NCBI GenBank assembly: GCA_965240325.2
Contig: OZ251245.1
Location: 434,001-498,000 of the forward strand
DNA length: 64,000 nt
Origin: Rebecca billardiae RCC1528
Taxonomy: Eukaryota > Protista > Haptophyta
Reading direction: 5' to 3'
Part shown: positions 1,091 to 56,037 of the stretch, in pieces
How the letters are laid out: every line of letters starts with the position of its first letter
Numbering within the stretch: the stretch's first letter is position 1
Notes under the pieces: generated by a model
Databases searched by the model: none
What the model saw: the letters and a program-made list of their open reading frames with translations, nothing else
What the model was told of the DNA's origin: nothing
Position numbers and translations under genes: made by a program

Positions 1091-1223
1091 ATGTTCGTGC
1101 GTCTGGCGGACGTCGCGGCCCGTGGCGTGCGCTGCTCTGGATCCAGGATGGCTGCCCGCGCTTTTTTGAAAGCGGGAGGGAAGTCGGCGGCGCTCTCGAC
1201 CGGCTTGGGCCTCCTCGGCTGCG
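1091..1223. promoter_or_regulatory. Very short divergent intergenic region (putative bidirectional promoter) between J-protein and calpain
   Basis: Head-to-head start codons 133 bp apart; function is inferred. Confidence 0.45.
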
Positions 1224-4200
1224 ATGGCGCCGAGCTGGGCGCCGTCGAGCAACGCGTACACGCCGAGCAAGGCGGCGCCGAGCGCGCTGCCCGGCACGCG
1301 GCGCGGGCCGCCGCCGACGGTGACGCGTCCCGACCTCTTCCCCAAGTCGGCCGACCAGGCGGACCTCCTGCGCACCACGAAGAAGGGCACGCTGTGGACG
1401 GACCCCGACTTCCCGCCGACCAACGCGTCGCTGTTCGGCAAGAGCGGCAAGGGCTCGAGCGGCATGGCGAAGGTGAGCGCGTGGCTCCGGCCAGATGAGT
1501 TCGCGCCGCTGCAGCCCGGCGAGACGCACCGCCTCGTGTACGGCGACGCCGCCGCGGGCGACGTCGTGCAGGGCGGGCTTGGGGATTGCTATCTGCTCGG
1601 CGCGCTCTCGACGGCGGCGGCGAGCCACGTGGACGGGTACTCGCGGCTGAAGCAGAACGTGCTCCCGTCGGACGGCGAGTCGTTCGCCGACCCGCCCGAG
1701 TGGCGCGAGCGCGGCTTCTTCACCTTCCGCTTCTACATCTTCGGCGAGTGGGTGCAGGTGAGCGTCGACACGCTGATTCCGTGCGGCGCGGACCGCCGCC
1801 CGGCGTTCGCGCGCTGCGTCGACCCGCGCGAGCTGTGGGTGCTGTACCTGGAGAAGGCGTACGCCAAGCTGCACGGCTCGTACGCGGCGATCGAGGGCGG
1901 CTCGCTCACCGCCGCGCTCGTCGACCTCACCGGCGGCTTTGCCGAGGAGATCGACCTTCGCTCGCCGAGCGCGCGCGCCGAGGTCGAATCTGGCCGGCTG
2001 TGGCAGCGGCTGCTGCGGTACCAGCGGCTGGGGTACCTGATGGGCTGCGCGGTGACGGTGCCGGGCGGCGAGACGCTCGAGCGCACGCCGGAGAACCTGA
2101 TGCAGAACCACGCGTACGGCATCCTGCTGCACTACGAGCAGCGCGCCACCAACGCCGCCGCCGACGAGGCGGCGCTCCGGCTCGTGAAGATCCGCAACCC
2201 GTGGGGCCAGGGCGAGTGGACGGGCGCGTGGGCGGACGAGGCGGCGGAGTGGCGGAGCGAGACGGGGCGGTACGCGATGCAGCAGCTCGACTACACGTTC
2301 GACGACGACGGCACCTTCTTCATGGAGTTCGCCGACTGCGCCGCGCACATCAACACCGTCTACGTGTGCAAGATCCTGCGAGACGCCGACTGGCACCGCG
2401 CCGAGCTGCACGACGAGTGGAGCACGGCGGCGGGCACGGCGGGCGGCTGCTTCAACTTCCCCACGTGGCGGGCGAACCCGCAGTGGGTGCTGCGCGTGAG
2501 CGAGCCGACGCACGCGCACTTCGTGCTGCTCCAGCCCGACTCGCGCGTCTCGCGCTCCGGCGGCGCCACGCAGTCGCACACCATCGGCATGTACATCATG
2601 CGCGGGCACGAGCGCTTCCTCCGGAGGGTGCTCGTGAATTCGGACGAGATCGATGGCGACGAGATCGTCGACTCGACGGACTTCGTGCTGCGGCGCGAGG
2701 TGTCGTGCAACACGCTGGACGAGGAGGGCGAGATGCCGCTCGTGCCGGGCGTGCCGTACGTGCTCGTGCCCTCGTCCTTCTACCCGCACAAGGATGGCAC
2801 GTTCAAGCTCATCATGTACACGCAGTCTGAGGTGGGCAGCCTGGAGCGCGTGCCGGCGCTGCTGCGGCAGCAGAAGCGCGGGCAGTGGATCGGCCGCTCG
2901 GCGGGCGGGCCGGAGGGCGGGCCCACGTGGAAGCTCAACCCGCAGTTCCTCATGCACGCGCGCGGCGCGTCCGACGACCGCCCTGCGCGGGTCTCCATCG
3001 TTCTCCACCGCCGAGACCCGGACTCCGAGGATCCGGAGGCGGGCGCCAAGGGGGTGAAGCGGAAGGGGCTGGCGGCGGCGGGCGGCGCGGGCGCGGGCTC
3101 CCCCGGCGGCGGGGGTGGCAGCATGTCGCGGCGCGGTGGCGGGAGCACGGGGCTCGCGGGCGCGGCGATGAGCTTTGTCGTCGCACACGCGGACCCGCAG
3201 CATGCGCACCTCGCCGACCGGCGCACGCTGCGCATCCCGAAGCGCGACGTGGTCGACCGCGCCGAGGCGTCGCTCAGCGCCGAGGTGGGCTCGGAGTTCG
3301 TGCTCAAGGAGGCATGCACCTTCGTGATCGTGCCGTCGACGGGGGAGCGCGGGCAGCAGGGCGAGTTCACACTTGACGTGTACTCAGACCAGCAGGTCGT
3401 GCTGGAGGACGTGAAGGAATGGACCGCCAAGACGATCCAGGGCGAGTGGCGCGGCCGCTCGGCGGGCGGCTGCCGCAACACGCAGGCGTGGGTCGCCAAC
3501 CCGATGTACTGGCTGAGCGCGCCCGAGCCCGGCGGCGGCGGCGGCGACCAGTGCGTGGTGCACGGCTTCATCTCGCAGCCGCCGCGTTCGCTCCGCGCCC
3601 CCGAGCCACACGACACGCCCGCGCACGCGCCCGCCGACGCCGAGTCCGGCCAGCCGCCCGGACTCGAGGGCATCGGCTTCTACGTCCTTCCGGACACGGA
3701 CGACCTCGGCACGACGCCGCCCGCCGTCAACTCGGGCTACTACACGGCCGAGGAGGTCGGCGCGGAGTTCAGCCTGAAAGCGGGTGCGCGCGGCGCGCCG
3801 CGCGCGGTCGGAGGGGCGCGAGGGCGCTCGGTCGAGTGCTCTGCGCCGCGCGGCGCGGAGCAGACCCGGCCGGCCGCGCTCACGGAGCCACCGCCCTCGG
3901 TCAATCGCGGCTGTCGCGCGCCGCGCGCGCGCGTGCTGCGCGCGCCCTCGGCCGACGCCCCGGCCGTGCCGTGCCGTCCGCACGCAGGCGCCAGGTACAT
4001 CCTCGTGCCCACGTCGTACCGCAAGGGCTTTGAGTCGGCGTTCAGCGTGCAGCTCTTCTCAGAGGAGCCGCTCGAGTGCAGGCGGCTCAAGCCCGCCGAG
4101 CACGGCAAGCTCGCCAACACGCTGTACGAAGAGTATGCGGCCGGCGTGCTGCAGAGGGTGCGCGCAGCCCAGCCGTGGCCGCCCGCCGCAGCCAGCGGCG

Positions 4201-4606
4201 CGGGCGCATGCGCATCCGCGCGGGGGGAGAGCGCCACCCGCCGCCGCGCGCGTGCGCGCCGCGCCGCCGACTGCGCGCCCATGCGCGCCCCGCGCGCCCA
4301 TCGCCCTCGGCCGCGCGCGCGGCGCAGGCGTGGGCGCGCTACCTGATCCGCCGCAGGCTTCGCGACCGCGAAGTGACCCGCGCCAAGGAGATCGCCGTCG
4401 CGTGGTTCTCCAAGCCGTACCGGCACTCGGAGGAGGGGTACAAGGACCTCAACTTTGCGATCAACGCGCTCGAGGCGGCGTTCATCCAGCTCACGGGCGA
4501 CCCGAGCGCGCACGGCCGCTTCTTCCCGCGCATGCGCGGAAGGATCAAGGAGCGCGGGCTCAAGATCGCGGACTACGACATGGTGCTGCCTGGGCCGCAG
4601 GAGTGA
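1224..4606 (+). CDS. Calpain-family cysteine protease (CysPc + repeated domain-III/C2-like modules + C-terminal IQ-like motif); exons 1224-3783, 3988-4157, 4328-4606
   Basis: WTDPDFPP; catalytic triad [23 protein letters not shown]; three domain-III starts (W..TAGGC..F..NPQW, W.GRSAGG...NPQF, W.GRSAGGC...NPMY). GT-AG introns 3784-3987 and 4158-4327 restore a continuous frame. Confidence 0.9.
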
Positions 4607-6590: not shown

Positions 6591-7256
6591 ACTATATACT
6601 ACGCATCAGTGTTTTATATATAGTCTACTACTACAGACTACTACGACTACTAGTAGCGCAGCAGTACTTATTACTCGTCAGTACTACTCTATTGTCTCTA
6701 TTATCTAAGACTACTGCCAGTACTGACTCTAACTCGTAGTCAGATGCGGATCGACGGATGGCCCGCCGCCGGGCTCGGGCCTCGGCGTGACGCTGACCGC
6801 GCTTAGAACGCACTCGGCACTGCGCTTATACTGATGACGCGACTACATTTATACACATGCAGCAGGCAGTTATACAGCCCGGTGCGGTGGGCACTCGCCG
6901 TGTGGCCGCCGCCGCGGTCCGGCCGCCGGCGGGCGTCGTCTGTAGTCTGAGTCTCGTCCGAGTGTGAGTCATTGTCTACTGAGTCACGTCATCGTCCGTC
7001 GGCGTCACTCCGTGACCGTCAGTCGGGCCATAAGCTAGACTGTAGTAGGAGTCACTCACACGACACTCAGTACTCACTACACAGTACACACTAGTCACTA
7101 CACTGACTGTACTGTCTGTACACAGCCACAGGCTGACACAGGGCCAGGCTGAGCCTGACGGTGAGGCAGGCGAGAGTGACGCCCGCCCGAGGCCCCGCCC
7201 GGCGCCCATGAATTTGTCACCGTTTGTGCCGCGCTTCCGGCGGCCTCCGCCGCGCA

Positions 7257-9707
7257 ATGGAGGCGGCCCGCGAGGCGCTTCCGATCGCGGCGTTCCGCCG
7301 GCCGATCGTGGAGCGGCTGCGCGCGGACGAGCGCGTGCTGCTCGTGCTTGGCGAGACGGGCTCGGGCAAGACGACGCAGCTCGCCCAGTACCTGCTCGAC
7401 GACGGCCTCGTGCCGCCGGGCATGATGGTGGCCGTGACGCAGCCGCGCCGCATCGCCGCGATCACCGCCGCGCGCCGCGTGGCCGAGGAGCGCGGCTCGG
7501 CGGTGGGCGACGAGGTGGCGCACACGGTGCGCTTCGACGACACCTGCTCCGCGCGCACGCGCATCCGCTTCATCACCGACGGCTGCCTCCTCCGCGAGGC
7601 GCTCGACGCGCGCGCGCTCGGACGGTACGCTTGCATCGTGCTCGACGAGGCGCACGAGCGCTCGCTGAGCACGGACGTGCTGTTCGGCCTGCTCCGCCGG
7701 CTGCTGCGCTCGGGCGCGCGGCCCGACCTCCGCCTCGTCGTCGCCTCCGCCACGCTCGACGCCTCCAAGTTCGCCGCCTTCTTCGGCGCGCCGCCGGACG
7801 CGGTCGTGCGCGCGCCCGGCCGCACTCACGCTGTGAGCGTCTTCTATGCGGCGGCGGCGGCGGGCGGCGGCGGGGCGGAGGCGGGGCTGCGCGGCGGCGG
7901 CGGCGGTGCCGGCGGCGCCGAGCCCTCGCGCTACGTCGAGGAGAGCGTCGAGCTCGCGCTGCGGCTGCACGCGCAGTGGCCGGTCGGGCCGAACCACGAT
8001 TTATTAATCTTCCTCACGGGCGCGGATGAAATTGCGCTCGCGTGCGCCGCCCTGGAGGAGCTGGCTCGCGGCGGCGCGGCGGGGGAGAAGGCGCTGCGCG
8101 CCGTGGCGCTGCACGCCGCGCTGCCCTCCGACGCGCACGCCCGCGCCTTCGCGCCCTCCTCCGCCGCGGTGCGCAAGGTCATCGTCGCGACCAACATCGC
8201 CGAGACGAGCGTGACACTCGACGGCGTGCGCGCTGTGATCGACTGCGGCCTCGCAAAGGTGCGCCGGTACGACGCGCGGCGCGGGATGGACGTGCTGGGC
8301 GTCGAGCCGATCTCGAAGGCGTCGGCGCGGCAGCGCGCGGGCCGCGCCGGCCGCACGCGCGCGGGCGAGTGCTACCGCCTCTACACCGAGCGCGAGTACG
8401 CCGAGAACTTTCCGGAAGCTTCCGACCCGGAGATCCGGCGCACGTCGCTCAGCGCCATCTCCCTGTCTCTCAAGGCGATGGGCGAGGCGGACCTGCTCGG
8501 CTTCGACTTCGTGGACCCGCCGCCGCGGCGCGCGCTGCTCGGCGCGCTGCGCGGGCTGCACGCCATCGGCGCCCTCGACGACGCCGGCGCGCCCACGCCG
8601 CTCGGCGCCCGGATCGCGCGGCTGCCCGTCGACCCCAGACTTGGCGCGGCGCTCGACGCGGCGGCGGCGCTCGGCTGTCTCGAGCAGATGGCGACGGTGG
8701 CGGCCATGCTGAGCGGGGAGGAGCCGTTCGTGCGCCGCGCGCCCGGCGCGGGCGCCGGCGTGCGCGGCACGCCGGGCGCGCACGACGCGCCGGAGCTCAC
8801 GCCGCTCGCGCGCGCGCGCGCGCGCATGCTCGCCGAGGCGGCGGCGGCGGCCGCCGCCGGCGACGCGGGCGGCGCGGCCGCGGCAGGCGGCGTGCAGTGC
8901 GCAGACCAGCTGCTGCTGCTGCGGCTGTACGAGCGCTGGGCGGCGCTGGGCGGCGCGCGCGGCGCGCAGGACGCGTGGGCGCGCGAGTGGGGCGTGCACG
9001 CGCGCGCCATGCGCGCCGCGCGCGACGTGCGCGCACAGCTGCTCGAGCTCGCGCGCCGCGCCGGCCTGCGCGCCGACCGACCGGCCGCGGCCGCGGCGCC
9101 GCCGTGGCAGCCGGCGGCGAGCGCGCCCGCGGCGGCCGCCGAGGCGGAGCCGCTCGAGCGCCGGCTGCGCCGCGCGCTGTGCGCGGGGTACTTTGCGAAC
9201 GCGGCGCGCCGCGTCGGCACGGCCGGCATGTGCGTCGCGCTCGCCTCCGAGGGCGGCGGCGCCGCGGGCGGCGGCGGCGGCGCGGGCGGCGACGCGGGCG
9301 CGCGCGGCGGCGGCGCGCTCGTGCATGCGCCCCCGGACTCTGAGCCGGTTTTGTCCGGTAGCCTCTGCTTCGTGTACCACGAGCTGGTGTGGACGGGCTC
9401 GGCGGTGATGCGGTACGTGTGCCGCGTCGAGGAGCGCTGGCTCGAGGCACCGCTCGCGCGCCTCGCCGCGCCCGTGGACGCGCTCGTGCTCGCCGGCGCG
9501 CGCCGCGCGGAGCGTGCGGCGGCGGACGTGCGCGCGCCAGCTGCCGGCGTCAAGCGGCGCGCGGCCGGCGCGGACGGGGTTGGTGGTGCAGAGCGCGAGC
9601 GCGGCTCGGGGGCCGACGCGGGTGGCGATGGTGCGCAGCGGCGCAACGCGGACGACCGCGTCGCGGCAGCGCGCGCGCGCTTCTTGCAGCGGGCCGCGGC
9701 GCGGTGA
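7257..9707 (+). CDS. DHX40: DEAH-box RNA helicase, DHX40-like
   Basis: GETGSGKTTQ, TQPRRIAA, DEAH, SAT, TNIAETSVT, QRAGRAGR and an HA2 region. The C-terminal RRNADDRVAAARARFLQR resembles the DHX40 tail as recalled. Intronless; ATG at 7257. Confidence 0.85.
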   Translation: MEAAREALPIAAFRRPIVERLRADERVLLVLGETGSGKTTQLAQYLLDDGLVPPGMMVAVTQPRRIAAITAARRVAEERGSAVGDEVAHTVRFDDTCSARTRIRFITDGCLLREALDARALGRYACIVLDEAHERSLSTDVLFGLLRRLLRSGARPDLRLVVASATLDASKFAAFFGAPPDAVVRAPGRTHAVSVFYAAAAAGGGGAEAGLRGGGGGAGGAEPSRYVEESVELALRLHAQWPVGPNHDLLIFLTGADEIALACAALEELARGGAAGEKALRAVALHAALPSDAHARAFAPSSAAVRKVIVATNIAETSVTLDGVRAVIDCGLAKVRRYDARRGMDVLGVEPISKASARQRAGRAGRTRAGECYRLYTEREYAENFPEASDPEIRRTSLSAISLSLKAMGEADLLGFDFVDPPPRRALLGALRGLHAIGALDDAGAPTPLGARIARLPVDPRLGAALDAAAALGCLEQMATVAAMLSGEEPFVRRAPGAGAGVRGTPGAHDAPELTPLARARARMLAEAAAAAAAGDAGGAAAAGGVQCADQLLLLRLYERWAALGGARGAQDAWAREWGVHARAMRAARDVRAQLLELARRAGLRADRPAAAAAPPWQPAASAPAAAAEAEPLERRLRRALCAGYFANAARRVGTAGMCVALASEGGGAAGGGGGAGGDAGARGGGALVHAPPDSEPVLSGSLCFVYHELVWTGSAVMRYVCRVEERWLEAPLARLAAPVDALVLAGARRAERAAADVRAPAAGVKRRAAGADGVGGAERERGSGADAGGDGAQRRNADDRVAAARARFLQRAAAR

Positions 9708-10112
9708 CACTTGCGGCAGCACGCCACCCCATTTCGAGTGATGAGGGCGAGGCTCAGCCGGACCGGGAGGTGAGGGCAAACGCCAAACGGCCGCGGCGCA
9801 TCAGGACGTTTCAGCTTGCTGCGCTATTTTCGGCGCCTGATTGAAAGCCGTTCATCGGCGCTGGAGAACCCGAAAGCGAAGCTTGCTCATTGCGTCATTG
9901 GTCGGCCGTACATAGCAGTGAGTATATCATTACCCACATGTATGATAAACCCTCGTCGCGCCGCGCGCGACTCACAAGTGCTTTTTTTGCGCCGAACCGC
10001 TTCCCGAACGACGGGCGCACTAGCAGCGCGGAATTCGACACAGCGCCGCTGGGCGCCGGCCTCGTCGGGCTTGCCGTGTGCTGCGGACCGGTTCGCCGCG
10101 GCGTCGAGCGCG

Positions 10113-12191
10113 ATGGGGCGGCGCAAGATCATCATCGAGAAGATCACCAACGAGCGCCACCGCCAGGTCACCTTCATGAAGCGCAAGAATGGGCTGATCA
10201 AGAAGGCGACCGAATTGAGCGTGCTGTGCGACTGCGACGTCGGGCTGATCATCTTCTCGAACAACCGGAAGCTGTACCTCTACTCGTCGAAGGACATCAA
10301 CGAGCTGCTCGTGCAGTACACCGAGTACACGGGCATGCCCGAGGTGCGCACCAACGAGGACTACTTCCGCGAGGCGATGAAGAAGTCGAAGAAGGACGAC
10401 GAGGACGATGACGACGACGACGACGACGACGACGAGCCGGGCAAGGGCGGGCCCGCGGGGCCGGCGGACGCGGGGCTGGGCGTGCCGCCTCATCCCGCGC
10501 AGCAGCACTCGCCGTACGGCGTGCCGCCCGCGCAGGGCGGCTATGGCGTGCCGCCGTACGCGCCGCCGCCCGGGCAGCAGCCGCCGACGCCCGGCCACGG
10601 GCAGGGCCACCCGCAGGGGCAGCCGGTGTACGCGCCCGTGGGGTACGGGCGGCACGGCTACGCACCCGGGCTGCCCTCGCCGCACGCCCACCGCCCGCCC
10701 ATCGCGCAGGGCCACCCGGGCGTCGCGCACGGGTACGCGCAGCCGGCGGGCGGGCCTTACTCTGCGTCGCCCGTGCTACCGCCTCACCTGCCTCATCACT
10801 TTGCCCACGCCGAGCCGGCGCACTACGCGGAGCACGGCGGCGTGGGCGGCGCGGGCGAGACGCCGCCCCTCTCCGGCGGCTCCGCGCACACGCGCTCCGG
10901 CTCGGGCAAGAACAAGAAGGGCCTGTCGATCAACGTGCCGCAGACGGCACCCGGCGCGACGCCGTCGCCATCGGCAGGCAGCGGCGGTGTGCGGGCCACG
11001 CCGCTCAGTGACCCGGGGGGCCAGATGGCGGACGGCGGCGAGGCGGGGATGCAGTACCTGCCGCCGGCGGAGTCGATGCCGCCGCCCTCGAGGCTGCCCG
11101 CCGCCAGCCGGGCAGCCGCGGCAGCCGCCCACCCGCAGTACGCGCCGGCCATGCCGCTGCAGGCCCAGGTGGCGGGTGGCGTCGCAGCCATGGGCCAGCC
11201 TGTGATGGGCTCTCACAACGTACGGGCGGCGCGAGGGCGCGCGCGCGGAGGGGCGAGGGCTCGCGCCGCGCCGGGGCTGCCGCCCGCTGATGTCAAACCA
11301 CGCACCACTGGCGCGATGGACCGTGACGAGCGCACACCTTAGTCGGATTCGCTCTGAGGGCGGCGGGCCGGGCGGCGAGCGAGGCCGCGGGGTTGGCGGT
11401 GGCGGGGGCGCGGCGCGGCGCGCGACTGCTCACACGCACCCCCCCCCCGCGCGCGCGCGCACGCGCGTCCCCGCCGGCGTGCGCGCGCGTGCGTGCCGCG
11501 CGCGCGGCCCCGCCTCCGCGCGCCGCACGCGCAGGAGCAGCCGCCCGTCACGCCGCTCGCGCAGTTCCTGCTGCAGGGCGGCGACACTTCGAATATGCTC
11601 AACCAGCAAGCCATGGCTGCCGCGGCGTATTGGGCGCACCACGGGGGCGGCGCGCACCCGCCCGCGGCTGGGACGCCGGTGGCGGGGACGCCGGTGGGCG
11701 GCGGCGCGCACGCGGCGTACGGCGTGCCGCACTCCTCGGCAATACCGATGCCCCCGGGCGCGCCGCAGCACGCGCAGCACCTTGCGCGTGGAGGCGCGCA
11801 CGCACCCGGGGGCCCGCAGCCGTCAACGCCCACAATGGCTATGGTGCTCACGCCGTCCGGAGCGTTTTCGCAGCCGGGCTCGGCGCTCTCGCCGCTGCCG
11901 CCAAAGCTGCCAGAGACGCCGATGTCGGCGTTCTACGCCGCGGGGCCGGGGGCAGCAGGGTGCGCGCGCCGCCGCCCGCGCTCCGCGCGCCGCGGCGCGC
12001 GCATGCTCGCACGCTGACGCGCAATGCGTGCGCGCGCGCGCGCGCGCCGCGTGCGTGCGGCGCGCAGGGCGCCAATGCCGGGCGGCGCCGAGGGCGGCGG
12101 CGCGGGCGGTGGCGGCGGCGGCGAGCACAATGGCGCAGCGCGTGGGGGCGAGCGCGAGCAGGGGGAAGCGAAGCGTAGGCGAGGGACGTGA
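10113..12191 (+). CDS. MEF2: MEF2-type MADS-box transcription factor; exons 10113-11219, 11535-11959, 12068-12191
   Basis: MGRRKIIIEKITNERHRQVTFMKRKNGLIKKATELSVLCDC plus MEF2 subdomain (LLVQYTEY...RTNED), poly-Asp tract, Pro/Gly/His/Gln-rich region and a basic C-terminal KRRR after splicing. The GT-AG introns are frame-consistent. Confidence 0.88.
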
Positions 12192-21713: not shown

Positions 21714-24700
21714 ATGGAGGCTTCGGGACCGCCCGCCATGAAGCTCGATGACTCGCGCCAGGCGACGCGCTCCCCGTGGGCGGTGGCAGCCGTCACCATC
21801 GGCATGCTCCTCATCGCCACGGCGAGCAGCGCACCCCAGAAGATCAACACGACGGTGGCGGGCGGCGGCATCCTTGTATATGCTTCCGTCACGCTCGGTC
21901 TCCTTGCGGCCGCCTGGCCCGCCACCGGCTGCCGCACCCGAGCGCAGCGGCCGATTCGTTGCGCCAGCTGGTCCTACGGCCGGCTGGACGCGGCAGGCAC
22001 CGGCTGTGCACCAGCGCTGACGACTGCCACCATGCTCACGATGGCGCGCCTCGCCGCCGCCACTCCGGAAGAAAGCACTTCGATCAGCAGTTTCGCAGAA
22101 TGTATCTCCAACTCGGCAACATGCACTCAATTGTACGCGCGATCTGCCATTGCCGAGGGCCCTCCGTGTGCGCGCTGCTAGCATCGCAGCGGGCACCATG
22201 TCGTGTGTGCGGCCCCCACCCTCGTCTCTCCCCCCCCTCGCCCCCCGCGTGAGCTTCATCCAGTGGTGGCGGTGCTCCTCTATCCGACGTCACGGCTGAG
22301 GGTGCGGTGCTCGCGCGCGTGCACGATGCACAGGGACCTGGATGGCGGCACCATCATCCCGACCGAGATCGGCTCGGTGAGCAGCCTCACCTACATGTAC
22401 GCACGCGCATGCCCGCCAGCCGCCCATCGCTGTGGGCACTATGACATGCCCCCCCTTCCTGTGCGCGCCAGCTGCTGCACGATCTGACATCACTGCTGAG
22501 GGCGCGGTGCTCGCGCGCGTGCGCTACTGCCCGCGCGAGGCACAGGCGCGTGAAATGGACCTATCGCTCCCAAGGCAGTGGCACCATCCCGACCGAGGTG
22601 GGCTCGATGGGCAGCCTCGCCAAGATGTATGCGTGTGCGCCTGCCAGCCGCCCATCACTGCTGGCACCATGCCATCATGGGAGCCACCCCCGTGTGCGCG
22701 CCGGCGGCGGCGCGCCTTCTCGATCCGACGTCACTGCGGAGGGCGCGATGCTCGCACGCGTGCGCTGCCGCCCGCGCGACGCACAGGGAGCTGGAGTCCA
22801 ACAGTGTAACCGGCACCATCCCGACCGAGGTCGGCTCTATGGGCAGCCTCACCATGATGTACGCGCGCGCGCGCCGGCCAGCCGCCCATCCTCCATCGCT
22901 GCGGGCACCACCCATGCCATACGCGCCGCCCCCTTGTGCGCCCCAGTGGCGGCTCGCCTCCTCGATCCGACGTCAGTGCTGAGGGCGCGATGTTCGCGCG
23001 TGTGCGCTGCTGCCCGCGCGACGCACAGGAATCTGCATGAAAGCAGTTTAACCGGCACCATCCCGACAGAGTTCGGCTCGATGGGCAGCCTCACCTACTT
23101 GTATGCACGCACATGCCCGCCAGCCGCCCATCGCTGCTGGCACCATGCCATGCGCGCCGCCCCCTTGTGCGCGCCAGCGGCTGCGCGCCTCCTGGATCCG
23201 ACGCCACTGCTGAGGGCGCGATGCTCGCGCGTGTGCGCTGCTGCCCTCGCGATGCACAGGGACCTGTACCTTCTCAGGGCAAGCGGTACCATCCCAACCG
23301 AGGTCGGCTCTATGGGCAGCCTCACCTACATGTATGCACGCGCATGCCTGCGCGGGCACCATGCATGCCATGCGCGCCGCCCCGTTGTGCACGCCGGCGG
23401 CTGCGTGCCTACTCGATCCGACGTCACTGCTGAGGGCGCGATGCTCGCGCGCGTGCGCTGCTGCCCGCGCGACGCACAGGAAACTGATGGGCAGTTTTCA
23501 TACTTTTCACGGCACCATCCCGACCGAGGTCGGCTCGATGGGCAACCTCACCTACATGTATGCACGCGCATGCCCGCCAGCCGCCTCTCGCTGAGGGCAG
23601 CCGGGCACCATGCCATGCGTGCCGCCCCCTTGCCCCCTTGCGCGCGCCGGCGGCGGCGCGCCTCCTCGATCTGACCTCACTGCTGAGGGTGCGATGCTCG
23701 TGCGCATGCTGCTGCCCGTGCGACGCACAGGCTTCTGAGCAGAGCCAATTCGGGCGGCCCCATCCCGACCGAGATCGGCTCGATGGGCAGCCTCACCTAC
23801 ATGTACGCACGCGCATGCCCGCCAGCCGCCTCCGCTGCGGGTACCATGCCATGCGCGCCGCCACTTTGCCCCCTTGCGGCGCCGGCGGCGGAACGCCTCC
23901 TCGATCTGACGCCACTGCGGAGGGCGCGGTGCTTGCGCGCGTGCACTGCTGCCCGTGCAACGCACAGGCTCGTTTCGCCCTATTTAAGCGGCACCATCCC
24001 GACCGAGGTCGGCTCGATGGGCAGCCTCACCAAGATGTACGCGCGCGTGCGTCCGCCAGCCGCCCATCGCTGCGGGCACCATGCCATACGCGCCGCCCCC
24101 TTGCCCCCTTGCGCGCGCCAGCTGCTGCGCCCCTCCTCGATCCCACGTTGCGGCTGAGGGCGCCGTACTCGCGCGCGTGCGCTGCTGCCCGCGCGACGCA
24201 CAGGGACCTGGACCTGAACAGCCTAAGCGGCACCATCCCAACCGAGGTCGGCTCGATGGGCAGCCTCATCGCAATGTACGCGCGCGCGTGCTCGCCAGCC
24301 GCCTCTCGCTGCGGGCACCATGCTATGCGCGCCGCGCCCCCATGGGCATGTGCGCGCCAGCGGCGGCGCGCCTCGATCCGATGTCACCGCTGAGGGCGCC
24401 ATGTTGCGCAACGCACAGGGACGCTTCGTGGAGCGGTTTAAGCGGCGCCATCCCGACCGAGTTCGGCTCGATGAGCAGCCTCGCCAAGATGTACGCGAGC
24501 GTGCGCTAGCCAGCAGCCCATCGCTGAGGGCAACGCCCCCTTGAGCGCGCCAGCTGCTGCGCCCCTCCTCGATCCCACGTTGCGGCTGAGGGCGCCGTAC
24601 TCGCGCGCGTGCGCTGCTGCCCGCGCGACGCACAGGGACCTGGACCTGAACAGCCTAAGCGGCACCGTCCCGACCGAGGTGGGCTCTATGGGCAGCCTCG

Positions 24701-25210
24701 CCAGGATGTATGCGCGCGTGCGCCTGTCAGCTGCCCATCGCTGCTGGCACCACGCCAAGCGCGCCGCCCCCTTGTGTGCGCCAGCGGCGGCTCACCTGAC
24801 CTCCTCGATCCGACGTCACTGTGGATGGTGCGGTGCTCACGCATGTGCACTATGCCTGCGCGACGCTCAGGTTACTGAAATCAAACAGTCTAAGCGGCAC
24901 CATCCCGACCGAGGTCGGCTCTATGTCTGTGCTGCACGAAATGAATGTGGCCAACAACAAGATGTGGGGCGGTGTTCATGGCTTCCAAAACGTGCTTCCA
25001 TCGCATCTGCCTGAAGCACCGCCGCCGTCGCCACCTGCTCCCCCGCCGCTGCCCCCACCGCTGCAGGATTCTGGTCACCAACTTCAGCTCATGCAGATTA
25101 TTGCCTTGGCTGCTGGTGCATGCTGCTGCCTTGTGAGCACAATCGTGGCTGCAGTCTTCCTCCTGCCGCGCGTGATGGTAGTGGACAAGAAGGGCGGTTC
25201 CCTGCTGTGA
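21714..25210 (+). CDS. LRR receptor-like membrane protein, 13 exons, one LRR per exon: 21714-22132, 22334-22396, 22546-22626, 22787-22858, 23029-23100, 23260-23331, 23480-23557, 23731-23802, 23968-24036, 24204-24275, 24419-24490, 24636-24707, 24871-25210 (about 517 aa)
   Basis: Twelve repeats of a plant-type LRR (xLxxxxLSGTIPTEVGSMGSLxxM). All 11 internal exons are multiples of 3 and all introns are phase 2 GT-AG. Hydrophobic N-terminus, Cys-pair cap (CISNSATC), Pro-rich stalk, TM helix (IIALAAGACCCLVSTIVAAVFLL) and a short tail with no kinase. The start codon is uncertain. Confidence 0.85.
22133..24930 (+). repeat. Tandem array of 12 intron+exon units (about 215-250 bp period)
   Basis: Introns (143-201 nt) share GTA(C/T)GC..., CCAGCCGCCCATCGCTG, GGCACCATGCCATGCGCGCCGCCCC and CTCGATCCGACGTCACTGCTGAGGGCGCG...GCGACGCACAG. 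Confidence 0.95.
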
Positions 25211-27239
25211 GTGTCACTCGGCACAGTATCCCCTTACCGCAGGTTGCTTCTATACGAAGCAAAGATGGGTTCGCCCCCGCGGGTGCGTGCTCGGCGGGCA
25301 GGTGGACGCCGCGAGAGGGCGCGCGATGGCTGAGAGGCATCTTTGTGAGCATGTTCGTGGGCCACCCGAGCCTCATCGCCGCCGCCCTCCCCCTTCTCCG
25401 GTGCCACGGCGTCCAAACGGAGTGCCAAACAGTCGGTTCGAGCACGCCCAGAAGCAAAGTTTTGAGGGGTGCTCAGTTCGCCTCTGAGGTGCTCGTATCG
25501 CTGCGGTATGGTGCCGCACGCGGTACCGCATCAGGCGGGGTGAAGGACGTCACCCGCCGGTCGGCTCTCGGGCTGCCAGTCAGTGCCTGTGGTGCTCTGA
25601 CGCTGCTCTCCGAGCTCGAGATCCATCATGCGGCTTCCTGTGTGACGTCGGCAATGAGGAGGGTGTACTTGCGCACAGCGGGGCGCGCGCGTCGCGCATG
25701 TGATCGACACCGAAACAGACGAAGAAACATGACCGCCCATCCCGCCGAGCTCCTGGCTGACTTGCACTCGGCAATCACGCCGCGCGCGCGGCCTGCGGCT
25801 GCTGCGTGCGGCAAGCCGAGCCAAGCGTATCACGCGCAACTGGCAGGTGAGTGAGTTCACTAGCGCGACGAGTCAGGTGAACGCGCGCAGACCAGCGCGT
25901 GCAGTACGTACACCGCCTACAGCCATCTCGACCGATCGCCTACCTGCCTGAAGCAGCTGCAAGCGGCGTGCCGAGCCGGGTGTCGCGGGCACACAGTGCC
26001 AGCCTGGCGGGCACGACAGGCCCGTACGGCAGCTCGCGGCGCGCTGCCGCGGGATGCCATCGTGGAGGCATTGTAGCTGGAGGGACCAGTCTGGCGGCTG
26101 TCTACGGAGCAAAGTGAACTGCGGTAAGGGGATAGTGATTCCGGGCCCGACGCGACTACTATACAGTGACACCGCGTACGTATGGATGTACGCGGCTCTG
26201 GCTTCGGTTGGTCAACCCTGACTCTGCCAGAGACGGGCCCTCGTCTGCTAATTCTTTAGTCACGGCAATGAACTCATGCAATGATATGATGCTGATATGA
26301 AAAAATAACGGCGAAACACAGTGCAGGATTGGAATTTTCCGTGACGCTTCGGACGGTCCGCAGCTCGAGTCAGCGAATCCGGTCTCGGCCGGACAGTGGA
26401 ACTCGGGTGGAAGCCGCGACTTCGCGGCGGACGGAGCCTCAAACGAGCGGTGCCTCGGCTCGCGGCGCGATCTACTCGGCGAAGACCGACGAGGCTGCTC
26501 GCGGGCCCGACTATGCGTCGACGCGGGCTGGGGTCGTCTTCCGCGTGGCGCTGGGCAAGTTCCTCGCCGCCCTGACGGGTGCTCTCCTTTCGCCCTCACG
26601 GCGCGCGCGGTGCGTTTCGCGAGCTTCTTGCATGCACCGCCCGCGGTTGCGCCCGAGCCTGATGCTTCAGTCGACACGGCAGGTGGCTCGCGCAGGGTGG
26701 GATTGTGTGCGGGTGCCGCTGGCGGTGCGTCTCACCCTCCTGAAATTGTGTGGGAGGCTGTGACATTGCACGCGTACACCCCGCCACGCCCGCGGCCCGC
26801 CCGCGCAAACGCCGCGCCGCGCAGTTGTCTTTGACCTCGAGCGAGCCTGAGGCGTGGAGGCGACCGACGGCGGGGTGCGACTTGCCCACCGACCCGAGCC
26901 GCATCACCCAGCGCAGCCTCGCCCGCGACGACGCTTCGCCTGGCTGCCACTGCTCAGCCGCGTGCAAGGCGGGCTGGGCGACGTCCGTTTGCCGAGCGCG
27001 GCTGCAGCGCAGCACGCGAGAGGCTGGAGCGCCATGACGCGGATGGCGGAGCGGGCTTTGGGCTGGCTGGCATGAGCCGCCAGGCTGTACCGTCCGCGCA
27101 GATCGCGCTCGGCCCGGCCGCAGCCCTCCTGAGCGCGCGCCTCAGAGCTGAGACTGATCACGTGCACGCGCACAAGCCACACTGCCGTGGCTGTGTCGAG
27201 CAGCTGCGTGTGCTCGAGGCGCGGCGCTCGCACGGGCCA

Positions 27240-28000
27240 CGCGGGCGCAGCGGGTGCGCGTAGCTGGCGCACGCAGTGCCACGTCCTGCCGCGCCAGTTT
27301 GGCGGCCGTCCGCCCCCCCGAGCTCGAGTTCTGCGCGCTTTGCGACGGCGCGGCCGGCCGCGCCCATCTTCATGCTTGGGCACGCCAGCATGGCCGCCGC
27401 CGGGCCTGCTGCGCGCGCCGAAGCTGGAGGGCGGAGGAGGGCGCTGGGCTGCTCCTACGGCGTGCTGCAGCCCGGGCAGGCTTTTCCGCGGCGCGGCGAG
27501 GCCGTCGCGCCTGCTCGCCGCCGTCGAGTCGCCCGTGCTGAGTGACCGTCGGCCGCATGTGCTCGGCGGCACCGCAGGCAGGCGTCCCATACCAGTGTGC
27601 TCGAGCCGCTGCGCGCACCCAAGGCGAGCTGCTCGAGCGGGCTAGGTGGGCCCACGGAGTGCGCGCAGCTGGCGCACGCAGCCCCGCGTCATGGGGTGTC
27701 GGTTTGACGGTCGCCAGCCCCCGTGGGCTCGAGCTCTGTGCGCTTCACCACAGAGGTGCCGACGGCGCCCCGCGGCGCGCAACGGCGTGGCAGCATGGCC
27801 GCCGCCGGCGCCGCCGCACATGCCGCCGCTTACGGGCAGTCGAGAGCTTGGGGCAGCACCTACGGCATGCTGCAGCTCGGGCGGGCTCTGCCAGCCTGCT
27901 GTGGCGTGATCGCGCATTTTCCAGACCGTCGACTCGCCCGCGCTGCATATTTGTTTGCTGCGCGTGCTCGACGGCGCCGCTGCTGCCGCTACGGCCGCGC
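27240..28000 (+). repeat. Diverged tandem duplication, period about 405 bp
   Basis: Shared blocks AGCTGGCGCACGCAG, CAGCATGGCCGCCGCCGG (27387/27791) and CTACGGCRTGCTGCAGCYCGGGC (27455/27860). Confidence 0.55.
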
Positions 28001-47097: not shown

Positions 47098-48537
47098 TCA
47101 GTACCACGAGAGCGCCTTGTCCACAAAGTAGATTGCGCGCACCATCGCGTTGCCCTCGTCTGCGATCAGCGCAAACGGCCTGTCGTCGTGGTTGAGCTCG
47201 CTTGCGACGGCGGTCGGGCTGTTGAACATGGCGGCGGGGGCGACGCCGTCCTGGTACGCGGGCTCGCCGCCGCCGGCGAGCGTCTGCACCTTGCAGCGCA
47301 CGCCGGCGTGGCACAGCGCCACCTCCACGCGCCGCACCACGTTGTTCGCCGTGTCCGCCACGATCAGCGCTCGGCCACCCGGCCCGAGTGAGACGCCGCG
47401 CGGCGCGTGGAACTGCCCCGGGTTGTGTCGCCGCACGTCCGTGTCGTCATCGCCCGCGACGCCCGAGCCGGCGAAGGTGCGCGTCGCGCCGGTGGCGACG
47501 TCGACCGCGCGGATCACGTGGAACCCCGTGTCCGCCACGTACACCGTGCGGTCGTCGTCCGAGATCGCCACGCCCATCGGCTGCGAGAAGCGCGCCGCCG
47601 CGCCCGCGCCGTCGACGAGCGTCTCCGCGGGCCGCTCGGTGTACGTTCCGGCGAGCGTGCGCACGCGGCCGGAGGGCAGCTCGACGAGCCGGATCGCGTT
47701 GTTGTCGGTGTCCGCGACTGCGGCGAACGAGCCGTCAGACGACACCGCCACCCCGCTCGGCGCGGCGAACGCCGCCTCGTCCGGCTCGCCGTCCGTCAGG
47801 TCCCACTCGCCGCTGCCCGCCACCACGCTCACGTTGCCGCTCGGCAGGTGGAGCTGCTTGAGCGTGTTCGCGTCCATGTCGGTGAAGAGGACGGTGGAGG
47901 GCTGGTCGGGGCGGAACGCGACGCCGTGCGGCCGGCGGCCCACGCCGCGCGCGGCGGTGCTCACCGCGGTGCTGCGCAGGTCCACCACGCGGATGGCGGC
48001 GCTCCCCTCCTCCGTGAGCACCGCGTGCAACCGGTCGGGCGAGAGCGCGAGGCCGGTGAGCTTGCCGAAGCCCGCGCTGAGCCCGCTGGGCGAGTCGGCG
48101 GTGCCCAGCGCGCCGTTGCCGGCGACCGTGGACACGTTGATCGGGTACCCGCGCTTCCGAGGCGCCACCGCCTTGCAGCCCTTCCTCTGGCCGCACTGCA
48201 GCTTGCAGCAGCCGCACATGCAGTACGGCCGCTGCCAGCCGACCGGCTCGCGGTAGAAGTGGCCGCAGGCGCCCTTCGCGCAGCGCGCGTGCATGCAGCG
48301 TGCGCAGACGTTGCCCTTCTCGAGCGGCGCGGCGGGCACGGGCGGCGTGCTCCGAGTCAGCGCGTCGGCGCGCCCGGCACCGAGCGCCGAAGATGCGGCA
48401 GCGCCGAGCGCGACCACCGCGAGGGTCGTCGCGGCGACGGCGGCGACCGTGAGCGCGACGGCGCGCCAGCCATGGCGCGGAGTGCTACTGGCCACACCTG
48501 CGACGCTCTCGCCGCCCGCCGGCGGCTCGCTTGGCAT
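47098..48537 (-). CDS. Type II membrane NHL-repeat (beta-propeller) protein with a Cys-rich juxtamembrane module
   Basis: Repeats such as F..P.GVA.S.DG...VADT.NN.IR.V...G.V.TLAG, an N-terminal TM segment and a cluster of Cys residues before the propeller. Confidence 0.9.
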   Translation of the reverse strand: MPSEPPAGGESVAGVASSTPRHGWRAVALTVAAVAATTLAVVALGAAASSALGAGRADALTRSTPPVPAAPLEKGNVCARCMHARCAKGACGHFYREPVGWQRPYCMCGCCKLQCGQRKGCKAVAPRKRGYPINVSTVAGNGALGTADSPSGLSAGFGKLTGLALSPDRLHAVLTEEGSAAIRVVDLRSTAVSTAARGVGRRPHGVAFRPDQPSTVLFTDMDANTLKQLHLPSGNVSVVAGSGEWDLTDGEPDEAAFAAPSGVAVSSDGSFAAVADTDNNAIRLVELPSGRVRTLAGTYTERPAETLVDGAGAAARFSQPMGVAISDDDRTVYVADTGFHVIRAVDVATGATRTFAGSGVAGDDDTDVRRHNPGQFHAPRGVSLGPGGRALIVADTANNVVRRVEVALCHAGVRCKVQTLAGGGEPAYQDGVAPAAMFNSPTAVASELNHDDRPFALIADEGNAMVRAIYFVDKALSWY

Positions 48538-48939
48538 CAGCCCGGCGGCGCGCGCGCGTGCCCCGGACAGCTCGAAAAGCGAGCGAGTCGCTGTGCTGCT
48601 CGAAGTCGAGACGCGCGAGGTGCGCAGCGGGCTGGTGCACTGGTCAGCACGGCCAACGGCCCACCTCGGCGGTTAGAGGTGATTCTGCTTATTAATTTTA
48701 TGCGCTTGGCTGCTTATTTATTCATTTGCTCATTTATTATTGTCGTCGCGCGTAACGTTCGACGCGAAAACTACGATCGATGAAAGCAGCGCGCGCAGCG
48801 GCGGCGAAAGTGAAAACTCGGGCGCGCGCCACATCCAGCCTGGTGCCGCGCTGCCATACATGTGCGCCGTGCGTCCAGCGCCGACCGGTCGCAAGGCGAC
48901 GACAACCCGCTAGGCTCCACGCGCAGCCTAGCCCTAGCC

Positions 48940-50992: not shown

Positions 50993-53030
50993 TCAGCGCA
51001 CAAACGCCCACTGCGACACGCGCTCGATCGCGTAGCACGAGGCCGCGGTCACGAGCGCGGTGGAGACGAGGCTCTCGCGCAGCGCGGGCGGGAGCTCGAC
51101 GAGCTCGAGCATCTCGTTCAGCGGCGCCAGCCAGCCGCTCGCCATCCCCACCCCGCCGCCCGCCATCAGCGTGAGCAGCGCAAACAGCGGCCGGTTCGAG
51201 CGCAGCGACTCCATGAACGGGTGCCCCGTGTAGTTCACGGCGAACGTCGTCGCCTGCCGGGCGGCGGCGGCGCGCGGGCAGCGCGCGGCGCAGCGTGAGC
51301 ACGCGCGCGGGGCCCACACCCCTCTCCCGCGCGCCCCCGCTCCCCGCGCGCGCCCTCCCCCGCGCCCACCTGCGCGAGCAGCAGCACGAGGTAGACCACG
51401 CTGTTGAGCACGCCCGGCTCAAACTTGCCCTCGGGGTCGCGCTCGCGGCCGGCTGGCTCGTGCGCGCTCGCCTGCGCGGGCGGGGAGGGCAGGGGGCGGC
51501 GTGTGTGTGTGTGTGTGCATGTGTGTACGTGTGTACGTGTGTAAGTGCGCGTGTGCGTGTGCGTGCGTGTGCGCGAGTGTGGCGGGGGGCGGCGCGGCGC
51601 GGCGCGCACCTCCGCCACCAGTGAGACGAGCGCCAGCAGGTGGCAGCCAAACTGGCCCGCCACCGACACGGCCACGTACGGCGACAGCACCGAGGTGGGC
51701 GGCTGGCGGGGGGAGAGGGTGGGCAGCGGCTTGGCGCGCGAGATGAAGAGGAAGGCGACGGCGTTGAGCATCGCGGCCACCGTCACCTGCGTGTCCCCGT
51801 TCTTGATCCCGTCGTGGTACAGCACAGAGAGGCCGTAGCTGCGCACACACGCGCACACACGCGCACACACGCACACACGCGCACACGCGCACACGCGCAC
51901 ACGCGCATGCGCGCATGCGCACACACGCCACAGGGCGCCGCGCGCGCGCGCGGGAGGCGGTGCGGGGCGCGTGGGCGCACAGCGGGAGCGGAGCGCGCGG
52001 CGCTCGCGCGGCGGGCGCGTGGCGCGCACGCGGAGAGCAGGCAGTTGAGCGCGAGGATCTTGAACATCTGGATGGTCGTCACCAGCGTCGCGCGCCCCTG
52101 CATGAGCACCTGCAGCGCGGCGGAGATGGAGGCGGAGCGCGAGGTGAAGGGCGAGGCGAACGAGGCGTCGCCCGGCCGCACCATCTGCACCTCCGCGTCG
52201 AGGTACGGCTGGGGCGGCTGCTGCGGCGGCGGCTGCGCGCCGAGGCCCGCGCCGCCCGCCCGCTGCGCCGCCGCGCCCGCGGCCGACCCGCCGCCCGCCG
52301 CCGCGTCCGCCGCCGCCGTCTCCTGGATGAGTGCGGCCAGCTCGCCGCCCGCGCCGCCCGCGCCGCCCGCGCCGAGCGCGAGGGTGTCCGTGTGCGTGCC
52401 GTGCGCGTCCACGTTGACGGGCGGGTTGATCACGGCGATGCCGATCGCCGCCTCCTTGAGCGCGCCCACGTCGTTGGTGCCGTCGCCGAGCATCGCTGTC
52501 GTCGCGCCCGTCGCGTTCAGCGCCGCGAGCACCGCGGCCTTCTGCTCGGGCGAGACGCGCGCGAACACGCGCACGCGCGAGAGCACGGCGCCCGCCTGCG
52601 CGGCGCTGCGCCCGTCGAGGAGGGCGGGGAGGAGGCGGCCGGGGACGCAGAGGTCCCACGCGCGCGCGAGCTCGGCGACCGCGCGCGCGCCCTCCTCCGA
52701 GCGCGGGTCCGTGAGTAGAGCCGACGGCGACGTCGCCGCCGCCGCCGCCTCGGCCGCCTCCGCCTCGGCCGCGGCCAAGCGCTCGCCCGAGCGGCGGCGC
52801 GCGCGCGCGCCCGCCCCCTTCTTGCCGCCCGCCTTGCCGCCCTTCGGGCCCTTCGCGGCGGAGGCGGCGGCGGACGCGTCGGCCGCGGCCTGCTCCTCCG
52901 CCGCCGCCGCCGCGCGCCGCAGCTGCGCCAGGTACTGCGCGCGCTCGGCCGCGGAGTGCATCGGCCGCCAGTGCAGGCCGCGCGGCGGCGGCGGCGGCGG
53001 CGCGGCGGCCGCGTCGGCCGCGCCCGCCTC

Positions 53031-53063
<33 letters not shown>

Positions 53064-55044: not shown

Positions 55045-55081
<37 letters not shown>

Positions 55082-55562
55082 CCGAGGGCGGCGGCGGCGG
55101 CGGCGGCGGCGGCACGTGCACGTACTTGCGGCGCTGCCAGTAGAAGTGCGCGACGCCCTCGCCCGCCGCGTCGCCCGGATCGGCGCCCTCGGCCGCCGAG
55201 CTCATGCGCAGCAGCCGGCAGAGCGTGCGCCGCCCGCCCGCGCCCGGCGCCACGACCTTCACCGCGGTCGCGCGGCGCACGTCGCGCACGGCGCGGAAGT
55301 GCAGCGCGACGCGCAGCTCGACGGACCAGTACGTCGCGAGCACCGACAGCCCGTGCAGCCCGACGAGCACCGGGAACACGTACGGCATCACCTCGTACGC
55401 GTGCGGCGCGCTAACGAGCGCCCACAGCGCGAGCGCGTACGCGCACGCGAACGGGAGGACGTCGGGGCGCAGCGCGGCGGCGCGCGGGGCGAGGAGGGTG
55501 ATCGAGCGCGGCTCCTCCTCGTCCGACGCGCTCGCGGACGCGCCCGCCGTTGGCGTCGCCAT
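50993..55562 (-). CDS. ATP13A1: P5A-type ATPase (Spf1/ATP13A1); exons 52030-55562, 51610-51838, 51370-51471, 50993-51253
   Basis: TGES, PPELPMELSLAVN (P5A signature), DKTGTLT, KGAPE, MITGD, GDGTNDVGALK, GDASFASPFTS, VNYTGHPFMESL; three frame-consistent introns. Confidence 0.95.
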
Positions 55563-56037
55563 GGCGCACGCAGAAGCTCGCGACGCGCGACGCGACGAGG
55601 GCGGGCTGCGCGGCAGCCACTGTCCGGGACGGCACGCACGCCGCGGCGGCGCGTGCGAGGCTTTTTATTGCGCCGATCCTTTTCTGAATGAAGCGTCGCC
55701 GCGATTTTCAGCAGCTGGACCGGCACGATGACGATGGCTGCCAAGCATAAAGCATCCGAACAGTGGGTGAGTGGGTGCGTACGTGCCATACCCCATGCGG
55801 CCGAGTACGGGCACGAGGCAGCCGCCGTGAAACGCTCAGCTCGCTGAGTATCCGTCGGCCTCCACTCTCGGGTCCAACTCACGTGGCGGCGCCGCCCGGT
55901 CAGCACCGGTCTCCGACTCGGGACAGGGCGCAGGCGCGGCGCGGCCGCTCGCGGCACCGGTACTGTCGTCTGGCCGAGGCCGAGGCAGGCGACCGAGCTC
56001 AGACGGACGTGCCGGCGCCGTGACGAGCCAACGCGTG

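Follow-up and report, generated by a model that had tools for sequence, protein, structure and literature searches.

Introduction

In brown algae (Ectocarpus, Saccharina) the genes for ROCO and leucine-rich repeat (LRR) kinase proteins contain "shuffling" exons that each encode a single LRR (Zambounis et al. 2012, PMC3341825; Teng et al. 2024, PMC11378527). These genes carry one LRR per 72-nt phase-2 exon and are characterized by tandem amplification, positive selection on concave residues and alternative splicing (PMC3341825, PMC11378527). The repeats of fungal NLR proteins (WD40, ANK, TPR) combine high internal conservation and concerted evolution with diversifying selection at binding-surface positions (PMC4986451). 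In plant extracellular LRR proteins the core is built from the consensus residues, and the concave face, where ligands usually bind, is lined by five variable residues of the beta-strand/beta-turn (PMC3138743). Here we describe a predicted membrane-anchored LRR gene of the haptophyte Rebecca billardiae RCC1528 (positions 21714-25210, plus strand). The gene lies in a 64-kb stretch of DNA with a G+C content of 71% (GenBank assembly GCA_965240325.2, contig OZ251245.1, positions 434,001 to 498,000). This stretch is called the window in the following, and all coordinates refer to its plus strand. Twelve plant-type LRRs of 24 residues, one per phase-2 exon, are followed by a proline-rich stalk and a membrane anchor. 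We consider it probable that this germline LRR receptor-like gene is shaped by concerted evolution together with positive diversifying selection at the concave face.

Comparison with described systems

The design of such a gene has already been published for the ROCO genes and the LRR-kinase genes of brown algae and for the fungal NLR repeats. What is new here is the type of protein that carries it and the host. Like the brown-algal genes, the haptophyte gene encodes a single 24-residue LRR in each 72-nt exon, its introns are in phase 2, and exon and intron were amplified together in tandem. A few positively selected concave residues are also a common feature (four sites in the published work, five a-priori positions here). 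Unlike in the brown-algal ROCO proteins, no ROC-COR GTPase or kinase was found here by Pfam scans of exon 1 and the last exon, and no coding-like open reading frame (ORF) was seen downstream. The predicted product differs from the brown-algal proteins as a membrane-anchored LRR protein of the plant type (SGxIP) with a tail of only 14 residues. The intron here lies inside the codon for LRR position 4 and the exons start at position 5, whereas the brown-algal exons start at the glycine of GxxP. This different intron position argues for an independent origin of the gene design. In contrast to the brown-algal arrays, no inverted, intronic relic or extra LRR cores were detected in the window, and scaffold residues and repeat length have been extensively remodeled in frame.

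With the fungal NLR repeats the gene shares tandem repeats homogenized by concerted evolution and diversifying selection at a few binding-surface positions. The fungal proteins have another repeat fold, with no LRRs found. Their repeats lie within one exon, they are cytosolic proteins with NACHT/NB-ARC domains, and repeat-induced point mutation (RIP) has been proposed as mutator. The repeats of the haptophyte gene are 63% identical at the amino acid level (mean column identity), which is below the fungal criterion of >= 85% over >= 100 amino acids, and an NTPase domain was not found by Pfam. Fungal NLR repeat domains are reportedly also treated by Paoletti et al. 2007 (PMC1805685).

The extracellular LRR receptors and receptor-like proteins of plants (PGIP, FLS2, EFR, Cf/RLP class; PMC3138743) resemble the predicted protein in the 24-residue consensus xxLxLxxNxLt/sGxIPxxLxxLxxL. 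Further common features are five variable beta-strand/turn residues per repeat and the arrangement of LRRs, a single transmembrane helix and a short tail. Unlike the plant genes, the haptophyte gene has one repeat per exon with homogenized introns, no apparent C-terminal Cys-rich cap and a non-plant host. The variable lymphocyte receptors (VLRs) of lampreys and hagfish arise by somatic assembly, in which flanking donor cassettes are added to a germline gene that is itself incomplete. With the protein described here they share an LRR scaffold whose diversity is mainly found on the concave face. In contrast to the VLRs, the germline gene is complete here, and no donor copies of the core or the variable block were found within the 64-kb window. 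The locus also differs from diversity-generating retroelements (DGRs): no template copy was found in the window, and all bases and codon positions vary; no systematic reverse transcriptase search was made.

Position of the variable codons

The translations of the 12 LRR exons were aligned to give an exon profile with the consensus xLxxxxLSGTIPTEVGSMGSLTx. This profile matched 51 sequences in the PDB, all of them plant extracellular LRR ectodomains. The top match was ERL2 (1.4e-13), followed by RGFR, FLS2, PSKR, BRI1 and SERKs, in the register dLsxNsLsGtIPtEvG. The repeats correspond to the 24-residue consensus LxxLxLxxNxL(S/T)GxIPxxLGxLxx of the plant-specific LRR class. From the profile register xLxxNxLSGxIP, exon residues 1-8 were assigned to LRR positions 5-12 (x5 L6 x7 x8 N9 x10 L11 S12). 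The constant GTIPTEVGSMGSL corresponds to the convex side (positions 13-24 and 1), and positions 2 and 3 are the final two whole codons of each exon. The exons were searched individually, and the assignment of the concave face rests on the profile register and on published knowledge of LRR structure. The repeat-unit exons of this gene are SGTIPTEVGSMGSL-type. When metagenomes were scanned for loci that match a degenerate pattern for GTIPTE(V/I/F)GSMGSL, the result was 0 loci.

A preliminary description of the window had listed the peptides encoded by the twelve exon 5' ends. It had reported that these ends vary more than the adjacent intron DNA, with indels in multiples of three and without stops. 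The peptides read exactly as listed there (Table 1). DNA identity averaged over pairs of units was 0.91-0.92 in the constant block and 0.82 in the introns, compared with 0.68 in the last 8 nt of the exon and only 0.46 in its 5' block. Per-column diversity amounted to 0.476 in the 24-nt variable block versus 0.228 in the most diverse contiguous 25-column intron window. The diversity of the concave-face codons (0.575) was never reached by 15 random intron columns in 200,000 draws. Each of the four exon length variants is divisible by three, which holds for only 3 of 21 intron gap patterns. The 97 variable codons contain no stop in the coding frame versus 13 in the next frame, and shuffled segments were stop-free in 1.2% of trials. 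Thus, the observation was confirmed far beyond chance.

Differences per codon were computed for the eight units in the common 72-nt register. The mean pairwise number of nucleotide differences was 1.8-2.4 at positions 3, 5, 7 and 8, 1.1-1.4 at positions 9-11 and about 0.7 at positions 2, 6 and 12. At positions 13-24 and 1 it was 0-0.86, with an intron-derived neutral expectation of about 0.5. Diversity therefore peaks at positions 3, 5, 7 and 8, which in the assigned register are exactly the solvent-exposed concave positions. Both the profile register and these peaks uphold the earlier mapping of the variable residues to the LRR beta-strand/turn. Hypervariability is indeed found at the exon 5' ends, but positions 2 and 3 of the same face lie at the exon 3' end. 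That it is confined to the ligand-binding face was an overstatement, as scaffold residues (L6, N9, L11) and repeat length also vary in seven of the 12 units. A complete L6/N9/L11-like scaffold is present in five units (3, 4, 9, 11 and 12). Scaffold residues are replaced in units 5, 7 and 10, and units 1, 2, 6 and 8 deviate in length by -3, +3, +2 and -1 codons, respectively. Overall, the scaffold positions inside the variable block are replaced in about half of the units.

Selection on the concave codons

The question posed was whether selection, mutation or DIFFERENTIAL homogenization accounts for this pattern. The neutral yardsticks agreed with each other: the divergence of the introns was approximately 0.18-0.20, and the synonymous divergence (dS) of the constant part was 0.20-0.26. 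The nonsynonymous divergence (dN) of the constant part was 0.06. Consequently, the constant part is under purifying selection.

A local dN/dS check of the variable block by the method of Nei and Gojobori (NG86) gave a ratio (omega) of about 1, which equals the random-codon baseline. The proportions of synonymous (pS) and nonsynonymous (pN) differences in the concave codons were 0.64-0.79 and 0.62-0.69, versus 0.68 and 0.70 for random pairs from the same codon pool. The concave codons are thus saturated, and the NG86 ratio is uninformative and does not refute selection. In contrast, the interleaved codons (positions 6 and 9-12) of the four non-redundant canonical units showed a dS of 0.26 and a dN of 0.165. 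These codons share the silent divergence of the flanks, which rules out both a hypermutable patch and an older block that escaped conversion. The excess divergence is codon-specific and not regional, and it points to selection on the encoded residues.

The units were further analyzed using a fixed-sites codon model (GY94-type) with shared branch lengths, equal codon frequencies, a star tree and three partitions predefined from the LRR structure. These partitions were x (the five a-priori concave positions 2, 3, 5, 7 and 8), scaffold and const. Omega_x was 6.4-8.7 and exceeded both 1 (2dlnL 28-36, p <= 1.3e-7) and omega_scaffold (p <= 3e-4). Omega_scaffold was 1.6-2.5 (versus 1, p 0.03-0.19), and omega_const was 0.19-0.34. 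These values hold for all units, without unit 11 and for the in-register units only. With a FastTree topology and equal codon frequencies omega_x was 7.3 (p 2.1e-8). In two F3x4 fits omega_x ran to its upper bound and one null fit was unconverged, although both rejected omega_x = 1 (p <= 4.6e-5). Reliance was therefore placed on the equal-frequency fits. The high omega_x together with the normal dS of the interleaved canonical codons supports diversifying selection, which the preliminary description had considered, and makes such selection on the concave face likely.

Concerted evolution and the array introns

Units 9 and 11 share an identical tract of 122 bp that covers the 3' half of the intron and the variable block (Table 1), despite an overall difference of 13%. 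This tract is the mark of a recent conversion or duplication. Distance matrices were computed separately for the variable block, the constant block and each half (5' and 3') of the intron, and they were uncorrelated (Spearman -0.24 to 0.11). Consequently, no single tree describes the units; their relations are mosaic and fit repeated short exchanges.

The array introns showed no compensatory covariation (covariation term +0.18) and no match in Rfam, and a structured RNA was rejected on these grounds as the cause of intron conservation. No copy of the intron motif was found in the window outside the array. Hence, there is no sign of a dispersed introner. Relative to their consensus, the array introns (22397-24870) carry 98 substitutions, 49 of which are C>T or G>A. 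About half of the substitutions fall on the approximately 50 CpG positions among about 150 consensus sites. This is an ordinary CpG-decay spectrum in an intron with 73% GC. In the absence of covariation and of an Rfam match, and with this ordinary spectrum, conservation of the introns needs no function beyond splice signals.

Besides the splice sites, the best-conserved intron element is a near-invariant GCTGAGGG found in all eleven array introns approximately 45-55 nt upstream of the acceptor (e.g., 23428-23435); one of them reads GGATGG instead. This region is a candidate branch-point region. The constant block has a G+C content at third codon positions (GC3) of 0.90, and lower values were obtained for exon 1 (0.78), the variable blocks (0.66) and the last exon (0.64); the long housekeeping ORFs of the window reach 0.94. 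The heterogeneity within the gene may be a footprint of GC-biased conversion in the homogenized parts.

Gene model

ORF and splice-site reading yielded a predicted gene of 13 exons. A 26-nt core of the repeat matched 12 times, always on the plus strand, and nowhere else in the window. The eleven array introns are 143-173 nt long, read GTAYGC...CAG and are in phase 2. Each of them splits a codon after the second base, and this codon reads ATG or TTG across every junction. In total, 12 conserved GT...AG pairs are present, all in phase 2. Among the 11 short LRR exons, 7 are exactly 72 nt long and the others 63-81 nt, again all in phase 2. The homology of the last approximately 80 nt of the first intron to the array introns indicates that the repeated unit begins inside the first intron.

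Exon 1 encodes two hydrophobic windows (amino acids 22-41 and 47-71), so that a signal peptide is ambiguous, and a Cys pair immediately before LRR 1. This 5' part of the gene model is uncertain. The last exon continues from LRR 12 into a proline-rich stalk, a single strong transmembrane helix (hydropathy window, amino acids 70-106) and a basic 14-residue tail, which ends at a TGA (25208-25210). With two hydrophobic windows in exon 1, the membrane topology deduced from hydropathy is tentative. No Cys is present between LRR 12 and the transmembrane helix. Pfam scans of the single exons (pieces of 23-139 amino acids), including exon 1 and the last exon, returned no domain, which is the expected result for such short pieces.

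The TGA is overlapped by the donor-like consensus GTGAGT (25207-25212). Splicing at this site would give the last exon the phase-2 end of the array exons. Further downstream, no coding-like ORF was apparent on the plus strand up to 29.1 kb. Therefore, the gene probably ends at the TGA despite the overlapping GTGAGT. Inspection by eye showed that the N9-S10 codons AAC-AGY of units 3, 4, 9, 11 and 12 (within 22787-24895) give rise to an in-frame CAG 18 nt from the start of the exon. It also revealed other in-frame internal CAGs at +18, +15 and +12 in units 5, 6 and 7, respectively. These CAGs could serve as cryptic alternative acceptors. According to the model, the locus is an ordinary germline gene whose product is a membrane-anchored LRR receptor-like protein. 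This protein would be expressed, expose its LRRs to the outside and bind a variable (biotic) ligand.

Explanations for the variable face

Concerted evolution combined with diversifying selection would explain the locus as follows. The recognition domain would have grown by tandem duplication of a 231-bp module consisting of one 24-residue plant-type LRR exon and one intron. Between modules, gene conversion in short tracts or unequal exchange would keep the introns and the convex-side codons (GTIPTEVGSMGSL) alike. Replacements at the concave positions 2, 3, 5, 7 and 8 would be fixed at several times the local neutral rate, with diversifying selection favoring new binding surfaces there. In about half of the modules the adjoining scaffold residues and the repeat length would have been remodeled, always in frame, approximately at the neutral rate or slightly above it. 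Several points weigh against this explanation. Seven of the 12 units have lost scaffold Leu or Asn residues or have changed in length, which could also mean partial decay, and the local NG86 omega of the variable block is about 1. The codon model uses a star tree or a single tree though the units recombine, and recombination is known to inflate site tests. Its alignment is tiny (23 codons in 8-12 units), and one synonymous rate is assumed across the partitions, an assumption supported by the dS of the interleaved codons. Moreover, selection was deduced from the units of a single gene, and expression and splicing of the gene are predicted from its sequence only.

Some of these points would also be expected under relaxed constraint, where the beta-strand segments drift neutrally, conversion homogenizes only the flanks and the block merely looks older. 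The remodeled units, an omega_scaffold that is not clearly different from 1, the local omega of the variable block and an expression that is only predicted all agree with such decay. However, a neutral block cannot surpass the neutral rate, yet omega_x reached 6.4-8.7 with shared branch lengths. Nor can contiguous conversion tracts skip codons 5, 7 and 8 while homogenizing codons 6 and 9-12 (dS 0.26 in canonical units), and the single clear recent tract of 122 bp does span the variable block. Purifying selection on the constant part, the 97 codons without stops or frameshifts (P approximately 0.012) and the length changes, four of four in multiples of three, are further arguments against decay, which we regard as unlikely. 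The preliminary description had named targeted mutagenesis as an alternative to selection. A raised local mutation rate at the exon 5' ends, be it germline or somatic targeted mutagenesis, with selection removing only frame-breaking changes, would fit the high pS of the concave codons (0.64-0.79). It would also fit the AT-richer composition of the block (GC 0.52, GC3 0.66), compared with a GC3 of 0.90 in the constant part and a GC of 0.73 in the introns. The high pS, however, equals the random-codon baseline, i.e., saturation after multiple replacements. The low GC3 is mostly due to AGT and YTA codons that are shared and probably ancestral, and it is matched by the unique last exon (GC3 0.64). 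The excess is codon-specific rather than regional, the interleaved canonical codons have a normal dS, and L6 is encoded by CTG in 7 of the 8 in-register units. All four bases and three codon positions vary without an adenine-specific (DGR-like) or CpA (RIP-like) signature, and substitutions in the introns follow an ordinary, CpG-biased spectrum. The 64-kb window yielded neither template nor donor copies of the variable blocks. Targeted mutagenesis is thus unsupported, and increased mutation in either form appears very improbable.

Alternatively, the array could be no gene at all, but a GC-rich satellite in which exons and frame arose by chance. In favor of this, the gene model was derived from DNA, the single-exon Pfam scans were blank and long spurious ORFs do arise in GC-rich DNA. 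A satellite would, however, not be expected to match the LRR ectodomains of plants in the right register at 1e-13, to show a dN/dS of 0.19-0.34 in its constant part or to conserve twelve GT...AG pairs that are all in phase 2. Moreover, the frame is kept in the exons only, and stalk, transmembrane helix and stop follow in frame after the array. We consider a satellite origin extremely improbable. Equally little credence is given to the array as a substrate for programmed diversification, either by in-frame skipping of the symmetrical phase-2 exons or by somatic mutation or conversion of the variable blocks. If this were true, clonal cells could display different receptors.

Other features of the window

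The coordinates of all features are compiled in Table 1. A two-copy direct repeat of 292 nt (27196-27487 and 27601-27892; 71% identity, 405 nt spacing) is located downstream of the gene. The ORFs of the window that matched Pfam families are long and intron-poor. One of them encodes a P5A-type ATPase that has no relative above 52% identity among 5.8 billion proteins; the best match, at 52%, is a Logan contig. Its named matches reach at most approximately 45% and span many supergroups, among them a glaucophyte transcriptome, animals, plants and Prymnesium. This indicates that the host lineage is poorly sampled.

Table 1. Features of the LRR gene and of the surrounding 64-kb window of R. billardiae.
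Feature	Position	Strand	Description	Basis
Exon 1	21714..22132	+	139 codons + 2 nt; ATG; ends TT/GTACGC (slash, exon end), phase 2	ORF, hydropathy, donor position
First intron	22133..22333	+	3' ~80 nt homologous to array introns; intron motif match 22278-22306	Alignment
LRR exon 1	22334..22396	+	63 nt; variable block 22334-22349 DLDGG; 3 codons below norm	
LRR exon 2	22546..22626	+	81 nt; variable block 22546-22579 RVKWTYRSQGS; +3 codons; scaffold L/N lost	
LRR exon 3	22787..22858	+	72 nt; variable block 22787-22811 ELESNSVT; canonical	
LRR exon 4	23029..23100	+	72 nt; variable block 23029-23053 NLHESSLT; canonical, N9 replaced by S	
LRR exon 5	23260..23331	+	72 nt; variable block 23260-23284 DLYLLRAS; N9, L11 replaced	
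LRR exon 6	23480..23557	+	78 nt; variable block 23480-23510 KLMGSFHTFH; +2 codons	
LRR exon 7	23731..23802	+	72 nt; variable block 23731-23755 LLSRANSG; N9, L11 replaced	
LRR exon 8	23968..24036	+	69 nt; variable block 23968-23989 LVSPYLS; -1 codon	
LRR exon 9	24204..24275	+	72 nt; variable block 24204-24228 DLDLNSLS; canonical	
LRR exon 10	24419..24490	+	72 nt; variable block 24419-24443 DASWSGLS; L6, N9 replaced	
LRR exon 11	24636..24707	+	72 nt; variable block 24636-24660 DLDLNSLS; same as exon 9 block	
Last exon	24871..25210	+	LRR 12 (variable block 24871-24895 LLKSNSLS), partial repeat, stalk, transmembrane helix, tail	
Tandem array of exon+intron units	22355..24925	+	Period ~231 bp, 11.1 copies	Tandem Repeats Finder
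122-bp identical tract	24113..24234 = 24545-24666	+	Intron 3' half and variable block, units 9 and 11	Column-permutation p < 0.0005
Calpain ORF (C2 + domain III)	1170-4343	+		Pfam
DEAD/DEAH helicase ORF	7212-9704	+		Pfam
SRF/MADS-box factor ORF	9774-11339	+		Pfam
NHL-repeat protein ORF	47101-48672	-		Pfam
P5A-type ATPase ORF	51786-55664	-		Pfam

Significance

Domains with one repeat per exon, concerted evolution and a hypervariable face were until now known from fungal NLRs and from cytosolic ROCO and kinase proteins in brown algae. If the haptophyte gene is expressed, it would extend this class to an extracellular plant-type LRR receptor-like protein. The array offers a clean test locus with neutral introns only 0-150 bp from the selected codons, and it is suited for population studies of host-pathogen or cell-cell recognition. 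If the design arose independently, this would point to a general way in which protists evolve fast-changing receptors.

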